A stretch of DNA of 63,923 nucleotides, counting the filler, from Olpidium bornovanus S191 (taxonomy: Eukaryota; Fungi; Olpidiomycota), in assembly GCA_017911155.1 (NCBI GenBank). It is 30 parts of 30 records of this genome, joined end to end, with 100 filler letters (N's around TTAATTAATTAA, not from the genome) between each part and the next. Parts side by side here need not be neighbours in the genome. Positions count along the whole stretch, not along the records: positions 49,309 to 51,538 come from JAEFCI010000893.1; positions 51,639 to 53,602 come from JAEFCI010008882.1; 28 more parts are not named here. One strand, given 5' to 3'. The notes beneath the pieces were generated by a model. That model ran no database searches and was not told where the DNA came from. It saw only the letters and a program-made list of their open reading frames with translations. The position numbers and the translations under genes were made by a program. Positions 8,303 through 53,602 of this stretch are shown piece after piece. Every line of letters begins with the position of its first letter. Position 1 is the first letter of the stretch.

Positions 8303-10147
8303 TTCACGAAGGGTAGAACCGAAGACGGGCAAGCGGCCCCGCTGTTACCGAGCTTCTTCGGAAGTGCTTCTGGCACGTGTTCTCTTCGACGGAACACGTT
8401 TTACAACGCCAGCGCAATACCAAATTATCCACAAACACACAACACACCAAACGGACTTCCTCACGGCCAAAGCAGACCCCGTTGCGCGCTGCCCCGTTTT
8501 CCTTAATCACGGAACGGGTCCTTCCCTCGGATGGATCCCGGAGCGGGTGTGTGTGCCGTGTGTATGCTGATCACGCACGCGTTCACAAAAACCACACGTC
8601 GCCGACAAAATTTTTTTTCTTCATTTTTTTTTCCCGCGCCGCATGANNNNNNNNNNNNNNNNNNNNNNNNNNNNNNNNNNNNNNNNNNNNTTAATTAATT
8701 AANNNNNNNNNNNNNNNNNNNNNNNNNNNNNNNNNNNNNNNNNNNNGCCATGAATACGTTCGAGCGCCAAAGGTCGAAAGGCGTAGGCTCGATACCTTGC
8801 TATGCCTTGCTTGACGCCTGTTGAGACCCCGCTTCCTTTTTCTCCCGCTCGGACCCCTTAAAAAAAACCACTCCCCCTCCTTTCCTTTTTCCCCCACACC
8901 AGACGCAACGTTGAGAACACATCGTAGGGAAAAAGAAAACATAGAACGAGAGAAACGATTGAGACGACCGGAACAGCGACTATTGGGACCAGAACTGCAG
9001 CTTCTTGTTGTTTTATTTTAGCGCGAAATCACAACGGAAAAGTCGCTTGTTGGCGCCTGGTTTAGAATTAGAATTAATCGGGCACGGAAAGGCCGGGGGG
9101 TTGAGTTGTGGGCGCTTTGCTATTCACAACAAAACCATTTGATCGGGCAGGCCAAATGACGTTTGTAGCTCGAGAACCTCGGGGGCCGAGGCATGGGCAG
9201 ACGAATTAAAGACACGCCTTCTCCGCCTTCCAGCACGCGTCCTGCACAACCGCCTGGGTGACCGCGGCATGGGCTGCTTTGTCACAGGCGGAAGACCGTC
9301 CTCCCACCCTCCTCGCCTGCATCTCCAGCGAACTCTTCCGGTTTGCGCTCGCTAGAATTCGCACGCGCACAGGAGCGCGTTCCCGTCAACGAATCCCTGA
9401 CGAATCATGTCGCGTCAATGGCGGTGCATAGCATAACGGTGTTACGTGAGGCGTCGGTCGCGCAGCAGAGGGTCTTCTGGGCGTCCGGAGAAACGCGTCA
9501 GACAACACGCGCGTCCACGTCGGTCCCGCCTCTTTCCGTCCCCCCCACACGCACACCATAGCCCCGCCTGACCGCGCGCGCGCGCCCCGCCGTTCCCACA
9601 GGCGACCCCGCGTCAGCGGCAAAACCCGCCGCAAAGGAAAATAAAAATGGAAAAAAAAGCTTGCGCAGTGCCCGCGCTCTCCTCACGATGGCCGCGTGGT
9701 GTGCTGCGGCGGCGCCCCTCGCCGCCGCCGCAAATGTCCATCCGCTCGGCGCCGCGCCCGCGCCTTCTGCGCGGCCGGTCTCGGCCTGCCTACCTCGGAC
9801 CTCCGGCAGAGGGGCGTGCTGGCCGGCCTCTCGCGGTCCGCGCTGCTGAGGCGGGCCTTCCCATCTTCTCGCCGGCCTGGGTCCCGGCGCACGCGTCGCC
9901 CTTCCGCCCGGCGGGGCCCGACAACGAGAGCGACGTGTCGTCGTCCAACGAGCTTGGGGACCTCGGGAAGCGCGCAGAGTTCCGGCGGAAGGTCGTCCGC
10001 GCAGCGATTTCCCTCGGGTTGCAGGACCGGCAAAGCCCCCGGCGTGGCGGTATGATCCGGCAGGCGGCGGCGGGTGCGGCGTTTCCTCCCCTCCCCTCCC
10101 CCGCGAGTGCTCTGGTCAGACGCGTCGCGGAGGGCACCTGCCCGGCG

Positions 10148-10511
10148 CTGCGCCTCCGAGGTACCATGGACGCAGGAATCAAGTTCGACGGGAGGGACAA
10201 AATATCAGGCTTTGTCATGTACACGGATTCCGACTGGGCTGGATGCCGCGAAACCCGGGCGTCAGATTCGTGGCCATGTACCAAGGCGGCCGGATATCCT
10301 GGAGATCAACTCGCCAAAAATGCGTGGCCACGTCGTCGTGTGAGGCCGAGTTCGTCGCAGGATCAGCAGCAGCGCCGTCTGGTTGAGATCCATGCTCAAA
10401 AGCATCGATCACGACGTTGTCAAAAATTCGACCCCGTTGCTTATAGACAACTAAGGAGCAGCGGAGTTGGCGGCGGACGCGAATTCTTCGAAAAGGTCGA
10501 AGCACGTCGAC
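10148..10511 (+). mobile_element. Degenerate Ty1/copia RNase H remnant
   Basis: LRGTMDAG..YTDSDWAGCRETR, then a frameshift to FVAMYQGGRISWRSTRQKCVATSSCEAEFVA, then IDN*GAAELA...KRSKHVD. These are the canonical copia RNase H motifs, with a frameshift and an in-frame stop. Confidence 0.85.
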
Positions 10512-11247
10512 NNNNNNNNNNNNNNNNNNNNNNNNNNNNNNNNNNNNNNNNNNNNTTAATTAATTAANNNNNNNNNNNNNNNNNNNNNNNNNNNNNNNNN
10601 NNNNNNNNNNNAAGGAGGAGCGCGACTGGAGCGAAGAGCAGCAGATGCCTGTTGTCGTTTCTGGCGTGCGTGGTTCAAGAAATCGAGATGAGCTGGGTCC
10701 CGTTCGCGCAACTTCTCAGGGCATATTCCATGACGTCATCGTTTTGTGCGTAGCTCCCGAACCGGAGGGCTTGGTTATAATACTGTTCTCGTGAACTTTG
10801 TCCCAAAAAACTCGACGGAAAAACTCCGACACAAACGGCGTCACGGGTTCGCTCGTGGATAGTAAGCGTCGACACCTCCAAACGCACGCCCCTCTTCGTC
10901 CGTCCCAAGGAGCGCGCCGACAGCCCGCAACGTGGTAGCGAGGTCGCAAGGCGTCCGGTCGCGGAAGGGTTCGGTCAATTCGGTTCTCTGGTGAGCGCCG
11001 CCTCCACTCGGATCACAACACTTTCCTTCCCCATCCCCACCGGTAGAGTGCGCCGCGCAGTCGGCCTACTCATTTCACAGCTGCAGTCGCCAGGTAGAAC
11101 CCCGTTTTCCGTCTTGAGGCCACCGTTGATCTCTTCCACCACACCGCCGCCTGGGAGTACAGAAAAAGTTACCAGCGTCTCTGCTACGACTTATCCCTGG
11201 GATCCGAACGGCAATGCTGGTCGCTGTGACGTTTCCTTGGTCCCAGA

Positions 11248-12430
11248 TCACGCGCCCGCCTCACAGCCTACTATGTCTGACCACCTTAGGTTTTGTTCCT
11301 TGAGCTTAGCCGCAACCCCCTCCTTTATCTCTGAGGTCACGAACCGACGAGGGCAGGAAGGGCGCACCCCGGTAAGCCTCAACAGTAAAACGAAACGAAT
11401 TCGCGAAACATCTTAAGTGACAATCGTAATCGATCCACACTGCTGCTGGCATCTCACCTCGCACAATCCCTGGGCCTTTGTATCCCAGCGACGTGTAAAG
11501 CTGGACGGCCGATGCTCCCGCGCGGGCATAATCGAGCGCATCGCCGGCTGTGTATATCCCGCCACATCCGATAATCGGTATTTTGCCTTCCGTCAACCTG
11601 TACACTTTTCTAACGACACGCAGGGCCAGCGGCTTCAACGGCGCGCCTGACAATCCTCCCGCTTGGGTTTTTAGCGACGGCGCTGCACGAACCGCACACG
11701 GTCAAAAGAAAATGACGATTACAAAGCGGAACGGCAACTGCCGTCGAACGGCCGCGCAGCACCACTCACGACTGCGGAGACTTGTCGGACGGCTGGTCGT
11801 GGTGTTGGACACGATGATACCATCGATCTCGCACTCGGCCGCCACGGTGGCTATGTCTGTGATTTCAGCATCTGAAAGGTCCGGCGCGATCTTCACCAGC
11901 AACGGAGGGCGCTCGTCGATCTTGTTTCGCGTCGCAACGACCTGCGGACGGAGGACGCGTGCCCGAACTAGCAGAACTGAGCGAGCGTCCAAACGACGGG
12001 TGCCTCCACACTGTAAGTAAACCCCCCTGCTGGCTACCTGCTTGACAAGACTTTGCAGCGCCTCCTTTTTCTGCAAGCCGCGCAAGCCCGGCGTGTTGGG
12101 GCTGCTGATGTTGACGACGAGGTAATCAGCATAAGGGCCGAACTTCTCGACGCCCTTTACATAATCCTCGACGTTCTCCTCAGGTGACGTTTTGTTCTTG
12201 CCGAGGTTGACGCCAAGCAGTTTCCCGTCCCGGAGGGACTTGTTCATGGGGTGAGGGTCCGCAGGTGACGCGTTGCACGGCCTCCGGCGGCTACGGGTGT
12301 AAGTGAAAAGCTGCAACCGCATCCGCAGGCGTTTGAGGACCTCGTTGTGACCCTCTGAGTTGAACCCGTATCGGTTGATCACGGCGCCGTCTTCCGGCAG
12401 TCGAAACATGCGCGGCCGGGGGTTGCCTGG
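11248..12430 (-). CDS. URA9: Dihydroorotate dehydrogenase (quinone), class 2, 5'-truncated
   Basis: Exons 12430-12038, 11941-11770, 11682-11458, 11330-11248. Motifs [85 protein letters not shown]. Confidence 0.96.
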
Positions 12431-12482
12431 CTGTGAATCGGGGATTTCGTTCAACTTTGCGCCTGTACGATGCGAACAACGT

Positions 12483-12513
<31 letters not shown>

Positions 12514-14401
12514 CGGGGGGGGGGTGCGGGNNNNNNNNNNNNNNNNNNNNNNNNNNNNNNNNNNNNNNNNNNNNTTAATTAATTAANNNNNNNNNNNNNN
12601 NNNNNNNNNNNNNNNNNNNNNNNNNNNNNNCATGGTGTCGGTCTGATCCGTCCGTTATGGATACAATCCCACGTGCGTCACCCCACTTGCCATCTGATCG
12701 TAATCATTAATGTCGCAACTACCGCAAATGTATTCACCGATCGATGCCGAGCAGGGCATTCTACAGCATTGCTCACGGTCGTTCTCGCAATGTTGCTCGT
12801 CATCACCGGCACTGACCTCACCCTCCGTTTCGTCCACGCAATGCTCCGCAGAAAATTCGCGGATCGCACTTTGCAAAACTTCCGCGGCCGCGGTAAAAGG
12901 GCCTGTCAAATCTAGAATTTGCGCTCCTGCGAGACAAGAGAGGATCCCGCCGACAGCTTATTTTGCGGTTTTCTGCAATGGAAAATGCAATAATTTTGTG
13001 GAGCGCCTCAACCAAGTGCTGGCATGATGCTTTTCGCCTCATCAGATTATGAGGCATCTTTTTCACAGCCGTGTTTTGTGCAAATCCGCGCATAATCGCC
13101 AAGCGCCAGCGGCGTTCGTGCGTTGTGGTGCTATGGGTGTAGGCGGCATGTGCCATGGCGTGGTTAAACAGTGGTCATTTTGGTCACGGAGACCTCGAAG
13201 CTGAACCCGAGACAATCACGTCAGGATCATTCACCACGGTTAGGTAGCGCCCAAGAAATTTAGCACCCGAACTTTCGGCGCCTGTCCCGCCGTTTTGCGC
13301 AGCGTCGACAGACTGTCCATCACCCAAAGCAACCGACAGGGTGGGTCGCCGTCAATCAGCTTCATGCTTCCTCGAGTCAGCTTTGAGATGCTCACGCGAA
13401 CAAGAATCAGCAGTACCTCGCTAGCTGTCCAAGGAGGCACATGACAGGTGGCCAGTGGAAAGACGGGCCCGATTGCCGGGGTTGCTGATCCTTCCGCTCG
13501 CGTCTTTCGGGGTGTTGCGCGACGTCGAGGTTTCTTCTGGGTGTGGGTGTGGCGGCGGCGGGTGTTTACCGCCCTGGGAACTTTTTTTGGGGGCGGGCGG
13601 GCGAACGCGCTCTGGCCTACCCCTTCCCTGCCCGCACTCCGCCGCTCCCGTTTCCGCCCCTCCCCGACCACGCCCCCCCCTCCCCCCCTTCCCTCCCCTC
13701 CCCTCCCCCTCCAACCTCCCTCTGTGGCGTCATCGGCAAAAAGAAAGTAAGGGACAACACGCGCGCGGGGTTCCCGCTGTTCCGCCCTCCANNNNNNNNN
13801 NNNNNNNNNNNNNNNNNNNNNNNNNNNNNNNNNNNTTAATTAATTAANNNNNNNNNNNNNNNNNNNNNNNNNNNNNNNNNNNNNNNNNNNNCTTTTGTCC
13901 CCTCACCATTGTTGCGACGTCGTACTTTTCTCCTGACGAGGTGTGGGCGTGTCGGCGGCGGCGGTCGGTTAGGGAGGAAGGAGGTCGAGCGGCGGGGGGG
14001 GGGGGGGGGGGGGGGGGGGGCGTGGTTTACGCGAGTTTCGGCGTTCGATTGCCGGGCGCTTTCCGACCGCCCCGGCTCGCTCGGCGGCTTTCCTTTTCAG
14101 CGGACGAAGGAGGGAATGCGGGGGGGTCTGTGTGTGGGAGGGGGAGAACGGGGAGGGGGAGAAGAAGAAAAAAAAAATAATCATAGCGACGGGAGACGGG
14201 AGCGTCCATGTGCGACCGCGGCGACGAGCCCTCCCGCACCGCCTGGGGCGGCGGCGCTCCCGGCAGGAGCGCTAGGAGCGGCAACGGCGCCGGAGAAGGA
14301 GCGCCCGCCGGTCGTGCTTCTCCGCGAGTCGCGGCGGCGCCCGCCTGGGGCGACGGGTCCGGGGGACAGAACGGTAAAAGCGAGACGGGACCCGCCAGCG
14401 G

Positions 14402-15766
14402 GTGTTGGAAATGCTTTGCCGTTTCTCCGAAGAGGCGCCTCCGAAGCTGACGCGAAGCAGCGCAGCATCGGGCGTCTCGCCGCGGAGGGCGCGAGCGGAA
14501 ATCAGCGACGGCGGCGGCGACGACGACGGCGACGACGACGACGACGTCTTCGAGCTTCTCGGCGCGGCCGTCGACGGCGGTTCCGGCGGGAACGACGCGG
14601 CGCCGGCGAGGAAGGCGAGGAGAGCGGCCGCCGGCGCGGACGGGGCCCGCCCCGCGACAGGCGCCGCGGCGCCGGCCCCGCGCGCGCGTGCGCCGCGGCG
14701 CGTGAAGCAGGCTGTCCCCGCCGCCCGGCGGCAGCGAACGGCCGGCGCGGTCGGAAACGCGGGGCGAGCGCCGCCGGAGGTTTTCGCGCAGGAAGGCCTC
14801 GAGAGCGCCCGGGCCGGGCGCACCGACGAGGAGATCGCAAGGCTCCTCCAGGAGCAGGAGTACGCGAGCTACCGCTCGTGGGTCGCGGCAGAGGGCGCCG
14901 CCGCGCAGGTCGGTCGGGCCGGGCCGGGCCGGCCCGGGGAGAGGGCCATCGGGTTCCGCAAAACGTGGGTTCTGGAAGCGGAGACTCGAAAATAAAAAGA
15001 ATCTTTCTCGCTTGTGACAGGCCGCGTCGCCCACGAGGCCCGCGGTTGTCCAGCCGGCGGCCGCGCAGGAACCGGTGCCGAGACGTCGCCCACAGGCGGG
15101 CACAGCGTCGACCAGGGTAGAAGGGGCGGCGTCCGTGTCAGGGTCGTCGGGCAGGTCGTCGTCCACGCGGGCGCGGCGACCAAGACCGGCGGCGCGAGGG
15201 GCCGCCGGCCCAAGAAGCAGGCGGAGACAAGCATCCGGCCGCGACTCGACCACTCGCGCGTTCGGGGGTCGCGGTCGGCGGCTAGACGGCAATGACGAGG
15301 TCAGGGACGCGGACGTGGCGGCTGTACTTGGAGCGTTCGGACCCGGCGACCGCAGTCCGACCAGAGGGGGTCGCGGTCGGAGGCCGGATTGGGATGCGGA
15401 CGTGGCTGCTGTGCTTGGGCCATTCGAACCCGGCGACCGCAGTTGGACCAGAGGGGTTCGCGGTCGGAGGCTAGACGGCAATGACGAGGCTTGGGATGCG
15501 GACGTGGCGGCTATACTCGCGACATTCGAACCCGGCGACCGCAGTTCGGCCGCCCTCTACGGGGACGCATTAGGGTAATAGTCCTGCACCGGTAGAAAGC
15601 GTTTCCAAATGAAATGGGGTTTATCTTTGGACGTAATCGCCCGCTTGATGTGGCGTCCCTTGACGTGCCCCTTCCGTTTTGTCGCAAAAACAGGTTCCCC
15701 GGACGTAGCTTAGCTGCTCACCCCGGCAACTACCTGGACGACGGCGAGATCGATATGAGCTACGAG
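14402..15766 (+). CDS. Low-complexity protein with ubiquitin-binding-like motifs, probably the N-terminal/central part of a RING-H2 E3 ligase, partial
   Basis: In-frame splicing ..14908 / 15021-15574 / 15694-15766. It encodes TDEEIARLLQEQEY, three DADVAA(V/I)L..F repeats and DDGEIDMSYE before a GT donor. MSYE(ELL) precedes the RING in RNF38/BIG BROTHER-like ligases. The start is uncertain and the RING lies outside the contig. Confidence 0.5.
15270..15549 (+). repeat. Diverged coding tandem repeat, 3 units of ~87-102 bp
   Basis: Each unit has CGCGGTCGG...GA(C/T)GCGGACGTGGC(G/T)GCT...TTCG(A/G)ACCCGGCGACCGCAGT; unit lengths keep the reading frame. Confidence 0.85.
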
Positions 15767-15929
15767 GTCGCATTCGTTTACTTGCGTTCATTTACCTGTT
15801 AATGCGGCTCCTCGTGAAGCTCCGCATGCNNNNNNNNNNNNNNNNNNNNNNNNNNNNNNNNNNNNNNNNNNNNTTAATTAATTAANNNNNNNNNNNNNNN
15901 NNNNNNNNNNNNNNNNNNNNNNNNNNNNN

Positions 15930-17762
15930 CATGGTCAGAAACGCCGGCTCGACGTTCGTCGCGCTTTTGGCCGACGTCTCCAGGAAAGGGATGCCGAGCG
16001 AGTCGGCGAATTCCTTGGTGTTAATTTTTTTTGTTGTTGTTTGTTCCCGATCGAGGGCGGCGACGTGGGAGGAGTTCAGTCGGAAAATTCATGACGCCGC
16101 CCATTGGTGCGGTCTCGTCCCGGCAATTCCGTCCCCCCCCCCCTCTCTTCCGCGGCGGCCGCCGCTACTTTCGGCTTTTCTACCCCCCGAGCCTTCCGTC
16201 CGTCCGTCTCTCACCTTTGCAGCGGTGTACTCGACGACCTTCTTGTTCGTCAGGTCGCTCTTGTTTCCGACCAGCAGCTTGTTGACGCCCTCGTTGGCGT
16301 ACCTGTCGATTTCCTGCATCCACTGCTTCACGTTGTTGAACGTCTCGCTGTCTGTCACGTCGTAGACGACGATGATCCCGTGCGCGCCGCGGTAGTACGA
16401 CGACGTGATGGTGCGGAAGCGCTCTTGGCCGGCCGTGTCCCACTCGGCTCCGGCAAGGGAAAAAAATAAAATAAAAAAGAAAACTCCCCCAAGGGGGAAA
16501 AAAATCCGATTGTGTTTTCGGCGGGAAGTGGGGGGGTTTTTTGGGGACATTGCGTTGGTTAACTCGAGCCCCCTCCCGGCTCCCTCCCTCCTCCCTCCTC
16601 CGCCTCCTCCTAGTTCTGGATTCCCCCCCCCCTCCCCCTTCAGATTCTGAATCGACGGGCAACACCGCACGTCGTTCGACGACGGCGGGACAGGAGAAAT
16701 GCCTGCGCGCCGGGTACATCGCGGACGCTTGTGCACCTACGATTTGCAGCTTTACTGTCTTGCCTTCCAACTCTATGGTACGAATTTTCTGGTGCGCGTG
16801 CAAACACCGCCACCCCCGCAACAATTAGCAGAAGCCCAGAAGGGGCGAAAGCGCAGTGACATTAACACCGCGGCTCCAAAGACGTACAAAATCGACGCCA
16901 ATGGTCGAGATGTAGCTCTCTGTGTACGTATCGTCTGCAAACCGCAAGAGCAGGCACGACTTGCCGACGCCCGAGTCCCCGATGAGGAGTAGTTTGAACA
17001 GAAAGTCGCTTCGGCCGCGGATTTGAACAAAACGTGTGTCGACGGAGGTGGGGGTGGGGAAAAAAAAAAAAAAAAAAGCGGGTCAGCTTGCTTCGAACCA
17101 AAAAAATTTTCGGGCGGGAGCGTCCTCGATATGTATGAAGAAGCTCGGCGAACAAGTAAGGTCGACGGGGCGGGGCCGTGTTCCGGGGAAAACAATAAGA
17201 GAAGTGACGTGATTGGCGGAGCAGACGGGCGCCCAAGCTGAGGACCGGCTGTTCAGGCTGCCCTCGACGCCGAAGGATGCGACGATATTGCGAGTTCCTT
17301 GTGGAAGCGATATATGCCGTGGCTCTGACGGCCACACCCCCCCCCCCTCCTTCTGCCGCGGAAGGTCCAACGACATATGTGCGAGAAGTCCCCCTTCCCG
17401 GTGGTGCCGATGCGCCAATCGGCAGTGGTAAACACCAACGCTCAGGCGGCAGCGGCCACTCCGGGGGGGGGGGACTGTGGCGATAACGTGCGCCGTGTAG
17501 CACCGCTGCGGTGCGGGCGAGAGGAGGGAATGGCGGAGGGGCCTGTCGTGGCCAGTGCCACAGAGAAGCCGAAACAAGTCCAGCAAACTCGGAAAGACGG
17601 GTTGGGCCCGGGAGAAGAGGGGAGAAGAGCGGAAGGGGCGGCGAGAGGGGGCGGGGAGAAAGAGAAAGAGCGAGAAAGCGAAAAAGAAAGAAAAAGAGAG
17701 AGAGAGAGAGAAAAAGAGAGAGAGAGGAAAAGAGAGAGAGAGACGTACTATTCGGTATTCAT
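15930..17762 (-). CDS. YPT1: Rab1/Ypt1 GTPase, 3'-truncated
   Basis: Exons 17762-17749, 17008-16888, 16788-16741, 16442-16215, 16013-15930. [81 protein letters not shown]. Confidence 0.97.
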
Positions 17763-50832: not shown

Positions 50833-51954
50833 ACGAGGGGCGACACCGAAAGTAAACGAGGAAGAAAACTACCGTCGTTTTCGGCAGAATTGATTGTGGG
50901 GACTGGGCGTGTTGGTTTGGGCCACGAGGCGGTTACGTGTGATACCTTATATTTAGGTTAATCGTTAATTATTATTAGTGCCAAAATTTATAAGTGGAAA
51001 AGTAGTAGAGGATTATGACCGTGCCAAAAAAAAAACGAAAAAAAAACTATCTCGCGGGCAAACACAGCCAGAAAAGGCGCGCGGCTGCCGTTCGGGGAGC
51101 TTGTATTAATCCAAATTCACGCGATATTGAAAATATTTTGACCACGGAAGGAGACGCTTTCCTGTGAGGACACGTGCCGACGGCGTTAGGGGGCCAGGCG
51201 GGGGACCTCAAAAAACCCGGCGGGCTTTCCGCCGGAGACCAACTTTTCGGAGGCTGTTATTTTGTTATCCACTTTAGTGTTTATGTTTGCTGTGATTTTG
51301 GCCGGACGGGGGGGGAAAAGGCCGGCAGGTGAAAGCAAGTCGCGAAAAGACCAAGTCTGGAGCTGGTCTGGGAGTCGAGGGTTATAAAGGAAATTTCCGG
51401 GCCGGGTCGAGATTTGAGTCGCGGCTCCCAGGCGGCCGAGAGGCTTCTTCGTTTCCGGAAGGGCAAAAATGGAGCTCGCGAGCTGGCGGCCGTTGAAGGT
51501 GGCACCGGCGGAACAGGGAAGGCCCGTGCAAGCGCATGNNNNNNNNNNNNNNNNNNNNNNNNNNNNNNNNNNNNNNNNNNNNTTAATTAATTAANNNNNN
51601 NNNNNNNNNNNNNNNNNNNNNNNNNNNNNNNNNNNNNNCGGTGCGGGGCAATTTCGGCCGCCTAACGAAGTTCTAACCGTTTTGCTCCGCAAACACGCGG
51701 CGTGTTTCCCACTGGCGCGCAGAATCTACTCGAAATCTCGGCAGTCAAAGAATGCATGTCTGGGGAAGTAGCCGACGTGGCCCTTCCTGCCTCTCAGGAC
51801 CGCAAATCGGACAATCAGGATGATGACAAGTTCATTTCGACGTTTGGCAGACGTATGCACGTGGAAGCAGTCGACGCCGCTCTTCCTGCCTCTCCAAAGC
51901 AGGAGCCGGGCCTGCCAGGCCTCCCAGTGGTGGCCGAAGAGACGATGAAGGTCG

Positions 51955-52087
51955 TGTTGCGCATCAAAAGTGGGCCAACCAAGGGTCAAACTCGGGACCT
52001 TCCCTATCCCCGAGGGACGCTCCAACCAACTGAGCTATCTGCCCAATTCACCAGGTGTCCGGCTCGCCCTCTGAAGCCATTCCAACC
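51955..52087 (-). repeat. 3' LTR of the TRIM (133 bp)
   Basis: Direct repeat of 52188-52319. The first base is G instead of T, next to the G-run PPT. Confidence 0.85.
51971..52044 (-). pseudogene. Decayed tRNA-like cloverleaf inside the 3' LTR
   Basis: GGGCAGA TA GCTC AGTTGGTTG GAGC G TCCCT CGGGGAT AGGGA AGGTC CCGAG TTTGACC CTTGG TTGGCCC A (74 nt). The B-box TTCGA has changed to TTTGA by a CpG transition; CTTTT follows. Confidence 0.7.
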
Positions 52088-52175
52088 CCCCCCCTCGAAC
52101 CAGGCACCTCAGGCACTGCTGTCAATAGAGCTCGGCCACCCGCGCAACCACAACCGGAGGGATGAAGTCACGATT

Positions 52176-52187
52176 GGGCTCATAACA
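52176..52187 (-). other. Primer-binding site of half-tRNA-iMet (copia/Ty5 hemivirus) type
   Basis: TGTTATGAGCCC immediately after the LTR end. The plus strand reads GGGCTCATAAC, the anticodon arm of initiator tRNA-Met. Confidence 0.8.
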
Positions 52188-52319
52188 TGTTGTGCATCAA
52201 AAGTGGGCCGACCGAGGGTCGAACTCGGGACCTTCCCTTTCCCGGAGGGATGCTCTACCAACTGAGCTATCTGCCATATTCACCAGGTGTCTGGCTCGCC
52301 CTGCGAAGCCATTCCAACA
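52188..52319 (-). repeat. 5' LTR of the TRIM (132 bp)
   Basis: TG...CA termini with TGTTG/CAACA inverted ends. Hand alignment to the other LTR gives 14 substitutions and 1 indel (~89% identity). Confidence 0.85.
52204..52276 (-). tRNA. tRNA-like cloverleaf inside the 5' LTR (nominal anticodon GGG, lacks U33), probably not a decoding tRNA
   Basis: TGGCAGA TA GCTC AGTTGGTA GAGC A TCCCT CCGGGAA AGGGA AGGTC CCGAG TTCGACC CTCGG TCGGCCC A (73 nt). D, anticodon and T stems are perfect, the acceptor stem pairs 5/7, A- and B-boxes are intact, and CTTTT follows. Confidence 0.7.
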
Positions 52320-53460
52320 GGTCGAAAGCAAAGTACCCGGCAATTACGGCCCAACGCGGTGTTTGACGAATGTATGCTTGTGAGATCAGTCAATGTGGCC
52401 CGTCCTGCCTCACAGGTGCAGAGCACTGATGTTTTGGTCTCCCTACAGTGGCCGAAGAGACTATAGCAAAAACTAAACGCTAACTGCCCGCCCACTTCAA
52501 GGATCTGCTCGGCGGCTGCGGAAGCATTTCCGCCCATGCCGGGAAGGACGTTGGCGGCAGCGTGAATCTTAACTCGCATGATTATTCCACTCTGATGAAC
52601 GGGGAATGGCTTAATGACGAAGTACGAAATCTTTCGTATTGTCCCTTCGGCGCGAACGCATAAGACGCAGCAAACAAACAGCCGCTCTGCCGCGTTTTCC
52701 AGCTAATCAACAAGGACTTGTCTCTTATTGCCAAAAGAGGCAAAATGCCGCGTTTCCCAAGGTGCATGTTTTCAATACATTTTTTTATAAATTGCTCGTG
52801 GACGGCGGATATGACAAACTAAAGTGCTGGACAAAAGTATGGTGCCCCTCTCAGCGAATTGTTTGCCGGCACGCCGCCATGCACTCGTTTCGCGAATATG
52901 TAACGTGAGACACGGGTTTTTTCTTCCAGAAAGTAAACATTTTTGATTTTAATTTCGTTTTCGTTTCCATTCACCTTGGACGCCACTGGGTCCTGGTTGG
53001 GTGTTTTTGAGAGCTCTTGGACTATTCACTACCACCGGTCCGGTTGCTCACGGCGTTTACGTTTTGTGCGCGCTACAGGCTGCTTGGACATGAAAAAAGA
53101 AGAATTTTGTATTACGATTCTTTTCATGCCCCCAATGACAACGCCCTAAAGGTATTCCTTCGGAAGGGCCCTGCGTTAGCGAGGCGGAGACAGAGCAGAC
53201 CGTTGCGGGGAGGGGGGGGTGGGCGGGCGAGCGCAGAATTTCCCAAACGGTCACGGCTTTCAAACCAGTTCTCCCCCAGCCTCAAACCCCGACCCCCTCC
53301 CCCTCCCTTCCACCCCTCGCCACGCCTTCTCCGAGATTTTTCTCGCAACGCCTTTAAGGGACAGGGGGGTTTTTTTTTGTTGCGAAGCGGAATCTCTTGC
53401 AGAAAAATTCATCGACCTACAGGGCCCGAAGAAACGTGAATTCGCTGTCACGATGAGTCT

Positions 53461-53602
53461 CTAAAACGCGACGCGGATCCTCATGTCCTCAATCTTCTTG
53501 CTAATCTCGACCGGCGTCCGCTCGAGCTCCTCGGCGATCATCCGCTTTTTCTCCGGCGCCAAAAAATTGAACTGCTCACAGAGGTCGCCGTCTATAACGC
53601 TC
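53461..53602 (-). CDS. RSE1: Splicing factor SF3B3/Rse1, last exon
   Basis: SVIDGDLCEQFNFLAPEKKRMIAEELERTPVEISKKIEDMRIRVAF*, the conserved SF3B3 C-terminus. Not in the ORF track because it has no start codon. Confidence 0.93.

Follow-up and report, generated by a model that had tools for sequence, protein, structure and literature searches.

A probable Helenus-type TRIM, old and decayed, with tRNA-derived LTRs in a contig assigned to Olpidium bornovanus

A 365-bp sequence on the minus strand at positions 51955-52319 of the window (the whole stretch of DNA analysed, 63,923 nucleotides with filler, along which all coordinates without a locus name are counted) is organised in the order LTR-PBS-core-PPT-LTR, and we conclude with high confidence that it is a Helenus-type TRIM. 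Helenus elements are TRIMs in which the LTRs derive from a tRNA (Kojima 2024, Biology 13:119, PMC10886601). The observations taken as a whole are very probably best explained by an old, decayed element of this type, with LTRs derived from a tRNA, in a contig assigned to Olpidium. The original prediction, made from the sequence alone, had proposed a TRIM with tRNA-derived LTRs, a PBS directed at the anticodon arm of initiator tRNA-Met and a 5-bp TSD, and this reading has been borne out by contig breaks, an empty site and further copies. Kojima interprets fungal Helenus in the same way (PMC10886601); the belief voiced with the prediction, that fungi had no described tRNA-LTR TRIM, was mistaken, Helenus being just that.

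The LTRs are direct repeats of 132 and 133 nt, 89% alike, separated by 14 substitutions and one indel (K2P 0.115). The 5' LTR (52188-52319, minus strand), defined by repeat comparison and by contig breaks at its edges, has the predicted ends TGTTGG...CAACA and the predicted length of 132 nt. The 3' LTR (51955-52087, minus strand), defined by repeat comparison, departs from the prediction: it is 133 nt long and reads GGTTGG...CAACA, its first base being mutated from the T of the family. At 52087 nearly all other contigs have A on the plus strand, T on the element strand; the 3' LTR here begins GG, not TG. The internal region of 100 nt (52088-52187, minus strand), delimited by alignment of four copies, is without coding capacity. 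At one end of it the PBS, TGTTATGAGCCC (52176-52187, minus strand), adjoins the 5' LTR and complements the initiator tRNA-Met anticodon stem-loop; the family form of this site is GGTTATGAGCCC, the first base being T in the copy studied. At the other end the PPT, GAGGGGGGG (52088-52096, minus strand), a G-run, abuts the 3' LTR. The whole is bracketed by GGTCG, read on the plus strand, at 51950-51954 and, identically, at 52320-52324. TSD, LTRs, PBS and PPT were thus each found where the original prediction had placed them.

Other copies were sought in the same GenBank assembly, a MAG of Olpidium bornovanus, and in contigs of public runs. The resulting family occupies at least three loci and includes seven LTRs, a second TSD and an empty site. 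The search for a copy with a different TSD, suggested along with the original prediction, brought to light another complete copy, of 359 bp and 86.6% alike, at L002 1662-2020, with CTGAC on both sides. An allele lacking the insertion and retaining one GGTCG, also suggested then, is present in a contig of run X1, where the two flanks meet at one copy of GGTCG (joint 51954 to 52344). The empty-site evidence is this contig, because the flank paralogue without the element (L004), tried as a clean empty site, has also lost 29 bp around the target site. Positions 1-626 of L003 form a tandem array, LTR-core-LTR-core-LTR-core. Mean column identity is 93% in the alignment of the seven LTRs and 92% in that of the four cores; in the four-copy alignment that includes GAGGGGGGG, the PPTs of the other copies read AAAGGGGGG, AAGGGGGGGG and GAGGAGGGG. 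Public-run contigs of other copies stop exactly at 52188 and at 52318-52320, and beyond these LTR edges they have unlike flanks or continue into PPT and core; the loose contig ends CCCCCCCTAGAGCCAGGC beside an LTR edge likewise come from other copies in these contigs. Run X11, which is DNA-like, has about 10 times as much summed depth over the LTR as over single-copy parts. The two independent full copies carry perfect 5-bp duplications exactly at their LTR edges, a coincidence with a joint chance of about 1e-6; since both TSDs are perfect and edge-exact and the PBS match lies at a fixed place, chance is excluded.

LTR-core-LTR is formally equivalent to 1.57 copies of a 233-bp unit, and the L003 array has this same 233-bp period, as would suit a tRNA pseudogene or tRNA-derived SINE that had been duplicated locally in tandem, look-alikes of PBS, PPT and TSD having arisen by chance. 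Tandem arrays of Helenus are already known, however (PMC10886601), and a mere duplication would leave much unaccounted for: the same two end bases in copies at unrelated loci; the perfect but differing 5-bp duplications, GGTCG and CTGAC; the empty site carrying one GGTCG; and a 12-nt PBS identical to that of Pucciniales Helenus lying exactly at one LTR edge, with a G-run exactly at the other. We consider such a duplication extremely improbable; in practice L002 and the contig breaks refute it.

The copies found are old, differing by 6-7% from the family majority, showing CpG decay and having LTR pairs that are 89-91% alike; the rate of decay is equal across all parts of the element. Exact-pattern scans of metagenome contigs with the LTR 3' end and with the T-arm region gave no match. 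One metagenome contig (P0006/L005), with three 343-aa ORFs, gave a weak match (33% identity, in five stretches) that looks unrelated, and BLASTN for the element in this contig found none.

Each LTR of 132-133 nt contains a tRNA-like unit of 73-74 nt with C and TTTT directly after it. Against Rfam RF00005, for which the gathering score is 29 bits, the unit of the 5' LTR (52204-52276, minus strand) scores 51.8 bits (E 9.6e-10) and that of the 3' LTR (51971-52044, minus strand) 41.1 bits (E 8.8e-07); ARAGORN reads both as Pro-GGG, its call for six of the seven LTRs. The TTTT run after the 5'-LTR unit (52199-52202, minus strand) and that two bases past the 3'-LTR unit (51966-51969, minus strand) are invariant in all seven LTRs, and the latter may be a Pol III stop and the end of R. 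In the 5'-LTR unit the A box is TAGCTCAGTTGG and the B box AGTTCGACCC. Box A is present as TAGCT..TGG (TRGCY..YGG in Helenus); box B is AGTTC, one base off the GGTTC of Helenus, and by decay AGTTT in four of the seven copies, the 3'-LTR unit having lost C56 through CpG decay. Both boxes are kept in the family majority sequence.

Scores above the Rfam threshold for both units and the prevalence of the Pro-GGG call could suggest that these are working tRNA genes and that the element spreads functional tRNA-Pro(GGG), a proposition that we regard as very unlikely. Pair 5:68 is unpaired in every one of the seven LTRs; U33 is absent, with C or G in its place; GGG, the anticodon, is not known to be normal for proline in eukaryotes; and the MFE fold of neither unit is a cloverleaf, stability being no better than that of shuffles (z -0.06 and +0.58). 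Kojima likewise judged most Helenus families nonfunctional as tRNA (PMC10886601). The complete tRNA originally seen in each LTR therefore stands as a cloverleaf recognised above the Rfam threshold, but is functionally incomplete in pairing, position 33, anticodon and fold. Thermodynamic folding having yielded no cloverleaf, it is the covariance model that supports the tRNA call, together with a register test: 90% of cells in the family are paired, versus 25-54% with the partners slid. The seven LTRs show no compensatory base changes, so the fold has no evolutionary support beyond descent from a tRNA. Divergence from the majority is 6.9% in the tRNA-like part and 6.0% and 7.2% elsewhere in the element; being no better conserved than the rest, and lacking compensatory change, the tRNA-like part bears no sign of selection on fold or boxes in the copies found.

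Fungal Helenus, with 113 families in Pucciniales alone and a few in Agaricomycetes, has been reported only from Basidiomycota (Kojima 2024, PMC10886601). The fungal families have 5-bp TSDs, and a PBS directed mostly, as in Ty5 and copia, against the tRNA-iMet-CAT anticodon loop; their PBS regions are common with those of Copia elements, mobilisation by Copia was inferred for them, and the lengths described for Helenus range from 311 to 1263 bp (PMC10886601). The Olpidium element conforms to this pattern: two short LTRs with TG...CA ends, each carrying a tRNA-like unit in its 3' half and a short T run after it; a 5-bp TSD and a PPT rich in G; the PBS GGTTATGAGCCC, matching the tRNA-iMet anticodon loop; the occurrence of tandem arrays; and LTR, core and total sizes of 132, 100 and 365 compared with 130, 95 and 355 in Helenus-4_PTrit. 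The 12-mer GGTTATGAGCCC starts the internal portions in the Pucciniales families sampled from the published Helenus consensus file, and the 10-mer TTATGAGCCC, with 49 occurrences in the file, starts them in the entries sampled.

The LTR was compared with this file through eleven k-mers of 9-14 nt rather than by alignment. Eight of the eleven are absent from the file; two generic tRNA-arm k-mers are present, and the entries seen place them in bivalve families; and the terminal 9-base TGTTGGAAT, with which the LTR starts, is found in eight LTRs, all of them from Pucciniales families. As judged by these k-mers, the Olpidium LTR is otherwise unrelated to the published consensus sequences. The original prediction had asked whether the LTR would match a described family; by the k-mers no named Helenus family does so beyond the first nine bases, which indicates a new family rather than a known one. 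The tRNA-like body differs as well, having the D arm TAGCTCAGTTGGTAGAGC and the anticodon GGG, and the host is assigned to Olpidiomycota, in contrast to the Basidiomycota that harbour the known fungal families. The novelty is confined to this: a further Helenus family, apparently the first in a zoosporic fungus. The 12-nt PBS, the TGTTGGAAT start, the layout and the TSD length are all shared with the basidiomycete families, and for that reason we considered whether the Olpidium family might be a true relative of them rather than an independent invention; we judge the idea doubtful.

Similar designs are known elsewhere. TRIMs with a Pol III-type small-RNA gene piece in their LTRs have been termed TRIMp3 by Kojima (PMC10886601). 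Cassandra of plants and Ajax of nemerteans, like the Olpidium element, are non-autonomous LTR elements with such a piece in each LTR, but there it is 5S (a 5S promoter in Ajax), whereas here it is tRNA-derived, and the hosts belong to different kingdoms; Rfam, scanned with E values of up to 1 allowed, found no 5S rRNA in the LTR, only tRNA. Copia of Drosophila and Ty5 of yeast share the 5-bp TSD and a PBS directed at the initiator tRNA-Met anticodon stem-loop instead of the tRNA 3' end, but these autonomous elements encode Gag and Pol, in contrast to the 100-nt non-coding core seen here. tRNA-derived SINEs (SINE2) resemble the element in their tRNA-derived head with A and B boxes, in being short and non-coding, and in their presumed Pol III transcript; they are, however, LINE-mobilised with a LINE-type 3' tail, have variable TSDs and lack LTRs, PBS and PPT, and the LTR, PBS, PPT and fixed 5-bp TSD of the Olpidium element, which has all the hallmarks of an LTR element, rule out its being a SINE2. 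Retrozymes, non-autonomous LTR elements of plants and animals in which the LTRs contain hammerhead ribozymes, are likewise TRIM-like, and carry a structured small-RNA module in the LTR in place of the ordinary promoter region; the module there is a self-cleaving ribozyme, not a tRNA-like unit, and Rfam found no hammerhead in the Olpidium element.

Fungal Helenus, Cassandra, copia and Ty5 suggest, by analogy, a possible mode of propagation. TFIIIC and Pol III would be recruited by the A and B boxes in the 5'-LTR unit; transcription would start near the 5' end of the tRNA-like unit, leak past the weak T4 run in the 5' LTR and stop at the corresponding T4 run in the 3' LTR. The resulting RNA of about 310 nt would have the tRNA-like unit with its T run (about 78 nt) as R, with 11 nt for U5 and 43 nt for U3. 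A 3'-truncated initiator tRNA-Met would anneal to the PBS through its anticodon arm and prime the minus strand; the plus strand would be primed by the G-run; and RT and integrase of an autonomous Copia-superfamily element would act in trans, the integrase yielding the 5-bp duplication. A partner from the Copia superfamily is probable, and Pol III as the transcribing enzyme a proposition on which we put even weight. We found no autonomous partner. Pfam gave no match on the ORFs of L002 and L004, and on the flank ORFs only a sub-threshold Peptidase_C48 (15.4 versus 20.7 bits), from which it follows that no Copia domains adjoin the copies. Raw RNA runs X15 and X21 gave 2 and 0 reads, with none on the neighbouring SF3B3 exon either, and so carry no information on expression; the organism under whose label these runs stand is therefore probably not the source itself.

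The tRNA-derived piece might instead be a passenger, an old SINE or tRNA retro-insertion into an LTR for example, with no promoter role, the element being transcribed, as ordinary TRIMs are, by Pol II from U3 or through read-through from a host gene. In keeping with this, record 3 of the spliced RNA run X1 covers at 99% the flank, the 3' LTR, the core and the 5' LTR; the tRNA-like part is not conserved above the rest; and a T4 run lies between the putative start and the PBS. From its place within the 5' LTR, part of any Pol III transcripts would end before the PBS. Pol III function in Helenus is itself without experimental validation (Kojima 2024, PMC10886601). Yet the A and B boxes are kept in the family majority, as they are across more than 200 Helenus families (Kojima 2024, PMC10886601); Cassandra, the 5S analogue, is reported to yield Pol III transcripts (PMC10886601); and a total of 359-365 bp lies in the range of Pol III. 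A passenger role is a serious possibility, if one to which we give rather less than even chances. LTR-bearing contigs also reach a high summed depth in an RNA run, which on a more far-reaching and doubtful reading would count as the first indication that LTRs of Helenus are transcribed.

Assignment of the host follows the GenBank records, in which the protein names on family contigs take the form 'MAG: ... [Olpidium bornovanus]'. This MAG label and the origin of the assembly, a metagenome bin of 29 Mb cut from a 187-Mb raw assembly of non-axenic zoospores, together with Dikarya-like matches (Coprinopsis, Ustilago) in the raw data, leave room for a real element belonging to some other root-associated eukaryote, a basidiomycete for instance, that had passed the binning. 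We think this unlikely: the family or its flank is on four separate contigs of the bin, and by k-mers the LTR has no match to the published basidiomycete Helenus consensus past the nine terminal bases. A weaker indication against it comes from the SF3B3 tail on the same contig, which scores higher with human SF3B3 (54.5 bits) than with one fungal entry (40.4 bits), which we take to be that of Chaetomium. A search of the ESM Atlas with the SF3B3 tail gave no match usable for taxonomy.

For annotation the family has practical consequences, as tRNA finders score every copy as tRNA-Pro(GGG), and four GenBank protein models on three contigs (the 169-aa model of the studied contig, KAG5459221.1, KAG5457985.1 and KAG5457986.1) are ORFs across these elements. 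No new mechanism is opened by the Olpidium element. What it changes is the host range of tRNA-LTR TRIMs (Helenus, of the TRIMp3 type), which in fungi would extend beyond Basidiomycota to include a zoosporic lineage, the sister of the terrestrial fungi, and this wider range bears on whether such TRIMs originated repeatedly or anciently. If the Olpidium family should prove a true relative of the basidiomycete ones, either fungal Helenus and its partnership with Copia would predate the split between Olpidiomycota and terrestrial fungi, or there would have been horizontal transfer among root-associated fungi.

The piece that carries the element (window 51639-53602) is an entire GenBank contig, JAEFCI010008882.1 (1964 bp, assembly GCA_017911155.1). 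The element itself occupies 365 bp of the minus strand (51955-52319), and the anatomy claimed in the original prediction, LTR-PBS-core-PPT-LTR with GGTCG on both flanks, was found there in full: a 5' LTR of 132 nt (52188-52319; TGTTGG...CAACA), a PBS, TGTTATGAGCCC (52176-52187), a non-coding core of 100 nt, a PPT, GAGGGGGGG (52088-52096), and a 3' LTR of 133 nt (51955-52087), all on the minus strand, with GGTCG at 51950-51954 and 52320-52324. Together they make up the cis-acting parts of an LTR retroelement that has no coding capacity.

Other copies were sought with the 169-aa ORF that GenBank annotates across the window element, compared with 1.8 billion protein representatives; its matches were ORFs overlying further copies, whose contigs were fetched. 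A second full-length copy of 359 bp, 86.6% alike to the window element, lies at 1662-2020 of contig L002 (JAEFCI010007190.1), with LTRs TGTTGG...CAACA, PBS GGTTATGAGCTC and PPT AAAGGGGGG. Its flanks form a perfect 5-bp duplication, CTGAC/CTGAC, unlike the GGTCG of the window element. Contig L003 (JAEFCI010009164.1) carries at 1-626 a tandem array, LTR-core-LTR-core-LTR-core, with at least 3 LTRs and running off the contig start; the array lies ~580 bp upstream of a PBD-domain (PAK-like kinase) gene. Mean column identity in the family alignment is 93% (7 LTRs) and 92% (4 cores), the four cores giving GGTTATGAGCCC as family PBS.

Contigs of two public sequencing runs, X1 and X11, were also aligned to the piece at a likeness of at least 80%. 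Those from other copies break exactly at LTR edge 52188 (4 in X1, 1 in X11) or at 52318-52320 (8 in X1, 2 in X11), beyond which their flanks are mutually unlike or continue as CCCCCCCTAGAGCCAGGC, the other copies' PPT and core. At 52087, the first base of the LTR, nearly all of them have the family T, where the window element's 3' LTR has G. In X11, a DNA-like run, summed depth was 37.6 over the LTR against 3.4 in single-copy parts, a ~10x excess that serves as a rough indicator only. A single X1 contig, with 25 nt plus 20 homologous letters on its short side, passes from 51954 through a slightly diverged 52325-52343 to 52344 onward—flank, single GGTCG, flank. This one contig shows an empty site, from an allele or a paralogue. 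A mobile family should include a copy with a different target duplication and an empty site with one GGTCG; both were found, if by indirect routes. Other copies, contig breaks at LTR edges and the empty site together exclude chance and mere local duplication.

Between the two LTRs of the window element there are 14 substitutions and one indel (K2P 0.115), and 7 of the 8 transitions are CpG to TpG or CpA. Divergence from the family majority is the same in the U3-like part (6.0%), the tRNA-like part (6.9%) and the core (7.2%); among 7 LTRs, 19 of 55 changes (35%) fall on 8 CpG dinucleotides that make up 12% of positions. This even divergence and CpG excess indicate that the copies found are old and undergoing neutral decay that bears the mark of CpG deamination. 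The bias suggests either that these repeats are cytosine-methylated in the host or that CpG sites are highly mutable in general.

Each LTR of the window element contains one unit of 73-74 nt that scores above the gathering threshold of the Rfam tRNA model (51.8 and 41.1 bits against 29), is called tRNA-Pro(GGG) by ARAGORN and is followed directly by C, then TTTT. Tools that find tRNAs would likewise count the family's LTRs as tRNA-Pro(GGG). Across the 7 LTRs the cloverleaf register gives standard pairs in 90% of cells, against 25-54% with partners slid. Box A is intact (TAGCTCAGTTGG) and box B is AGTTCGA, decayed to AGTTTGA in 4 copies. The unit is not, however, a functional tRNA: pair 5:68 is unpaired in 7/7 copies, C or G stands at position 33, the anticodon reads GGG, compensatory changes are absent among the 7 LTRs, and the fold of lowest energy is no cloverleaf and does not exceed shuffled sequence in stability.

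We envisage that Pol III, via boxes A and B, would start the RNA at the tRNA-like unit of the 5' LTR, read through the weak T4 run there and stop at that of the 3' LTR, yielding an RNA of ~310 nt with R of ~78 nt, U5 of 11 nt and U3 of 43 nt. The minus strand would be primed by a 3'-truncated initiator tRNA annealed to the PBS, and the plus strand by the G-run; a Copia-type integrase acting in trans would integrate the product, making the 5-bp duplications. The chief alternative is that Pol II or read-through from outside produces the RNA and the tRNA piece is carried along as a passenger. Three canonical spliced joints identify run X1 as RNA, and in it the window copy lies inside a longer contig, besides many other LTR-bearing contigs; the contigs give neither strand nor ends.

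The insertion lies in the upstream portion of a gene-like region on the plus strand, between degenerate tandem units of ~99 and ~149 bp, ~70% alike (51740-51954 and 52325-52470), whose number varies in paralogous contigs (joints 'goes back 149', 'skips 507'). From its motifs WLNDE, VHVFNTFFY and HW (52449-53150, plus strand) and a sub-threshold Pfam match on one piece (Peptidase_C48, 15.4 bits, cut-off 20.7), we read the region as a fragment of an Ulp1-like (Peptidase_C48-like) protease gene. RNA contigs delimit GT..AG introns at 52372-52448 and 52622-52702, and in the window copy the reading frame appears to shift between LIAKRGK and PKVHVFNTFFY. The region is multicopy (63 X1 contigs on the piece at 80-100% likeness; paralogues at 77-82% on contig L004 of the same assembly) and may belong to another repeat family. 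Converging on it from the right end of the piece are the last 46 codons of SF3B3 (53464-53601, minus strand; E 3e-14 to human SF3B3), with a 341-nt GT..AG intron in the 3'-UTR (53080-53420, RNA contigs), 41 nt after the stop codon. Within this intron, G-rich and C-rich arms of 20 nt (53208-53227 and 53288-53307) are 85% complementary; the sole Rfam match over 53203-53318, mir-483, is at chance level (21.7 bits against 60).

Four GenBank/MAKER protein models, the 169-aa model, KAG5459221.1, KAG5457985.1 and KAG5457986.1, are antisense ORFs across LTRs and cores (window 51756-52265, plus strand; L002:1657-2078; L003:198-528), and are very probably artefacts of annotation. The ORF over the element also has a weak multi-stretch protein match to metagenome contig L005 (ENA ERZ25069853 ctg29807l, 10001-17487), which holds three 343-aa ORFs spaced ~3.0-3.4 kb; DNA similarity to the element was not found on L005, which is probably unrelated.

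The original prediction knew of no tRNA-bearing TRIM described in fungi; the class has in fact been published as Helenus (Kojima 2024, PMC10886601), with 113 families in Pucciniales, a few in Agaricomycetes, and others in animals and Selaginella. According to that study, fungal families have 5-bp TSDs and PBS regions in common with Copia-superfamily elements (one has internal ends common to Copia-9_PGr) and are unlikely to encode functional tRNAs; tandem arrays are noted, including for a fish family, and a Pol III promoter role is put forward, explicitly as unvalidated (PMC10886601). The Olpidium element shows every defining Helenus feature that could be tested. Its dimensions (LTR/core/total 132/100/365) resemble those of Helenus-4_PTrit (130/95/355), the 10-mer TTATGAGCCC occurs 49 times in the published consensus file (PMC10886601), and in the consensus entries sampled internal portions start ggttatgagccc, exactly the family PBS. 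Eight Pucciniales LTRs begin, like that of Olpidium, with terminal TGTTGGAAT, a possible hint that the ends recognised by integrase are related.

What is new is the sequence and the host. Of 11 LTR k-mers (9-14 nt), 8 are absent from the consensus file, while two generic tRNA-arm words occur in it, in bivalve families in the passages shown; judged by k-mers, then, the LTR matches none of the published Helenus families. Fungal Helenus was previously known only from Basidiomycota (PMC10886601), in a screen that was not exhaustive, being seeded from Repbase and then extended to relatives; in the literature searched we found no paper linking O. bornovanus with retrotransposons. WGS prefix JAEFCI denotes O. 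bornovanus S191 (phylum Olpidiomycota), and in GenBank and UniProt the proteins on these contigs are entered as 'MAG: hypothetical protein BJ554DRAFT_... [Olpidium bornovanus]'. The assembly is a 29-Mb bin, taken from a raw assembly of 187 Mb, of non-axenic zoospores washed off cucumber roots, with Dikarya-like sequences in the raw data, so the element-bearing contigs could stem from a contaminant host; against this, the family or its flank is on four contigs of the bin. The element is genuine and represents a new family within a known class, Helenus; with Olpidium as its host, it is probably the first Helenus from a zoosporic fungus.
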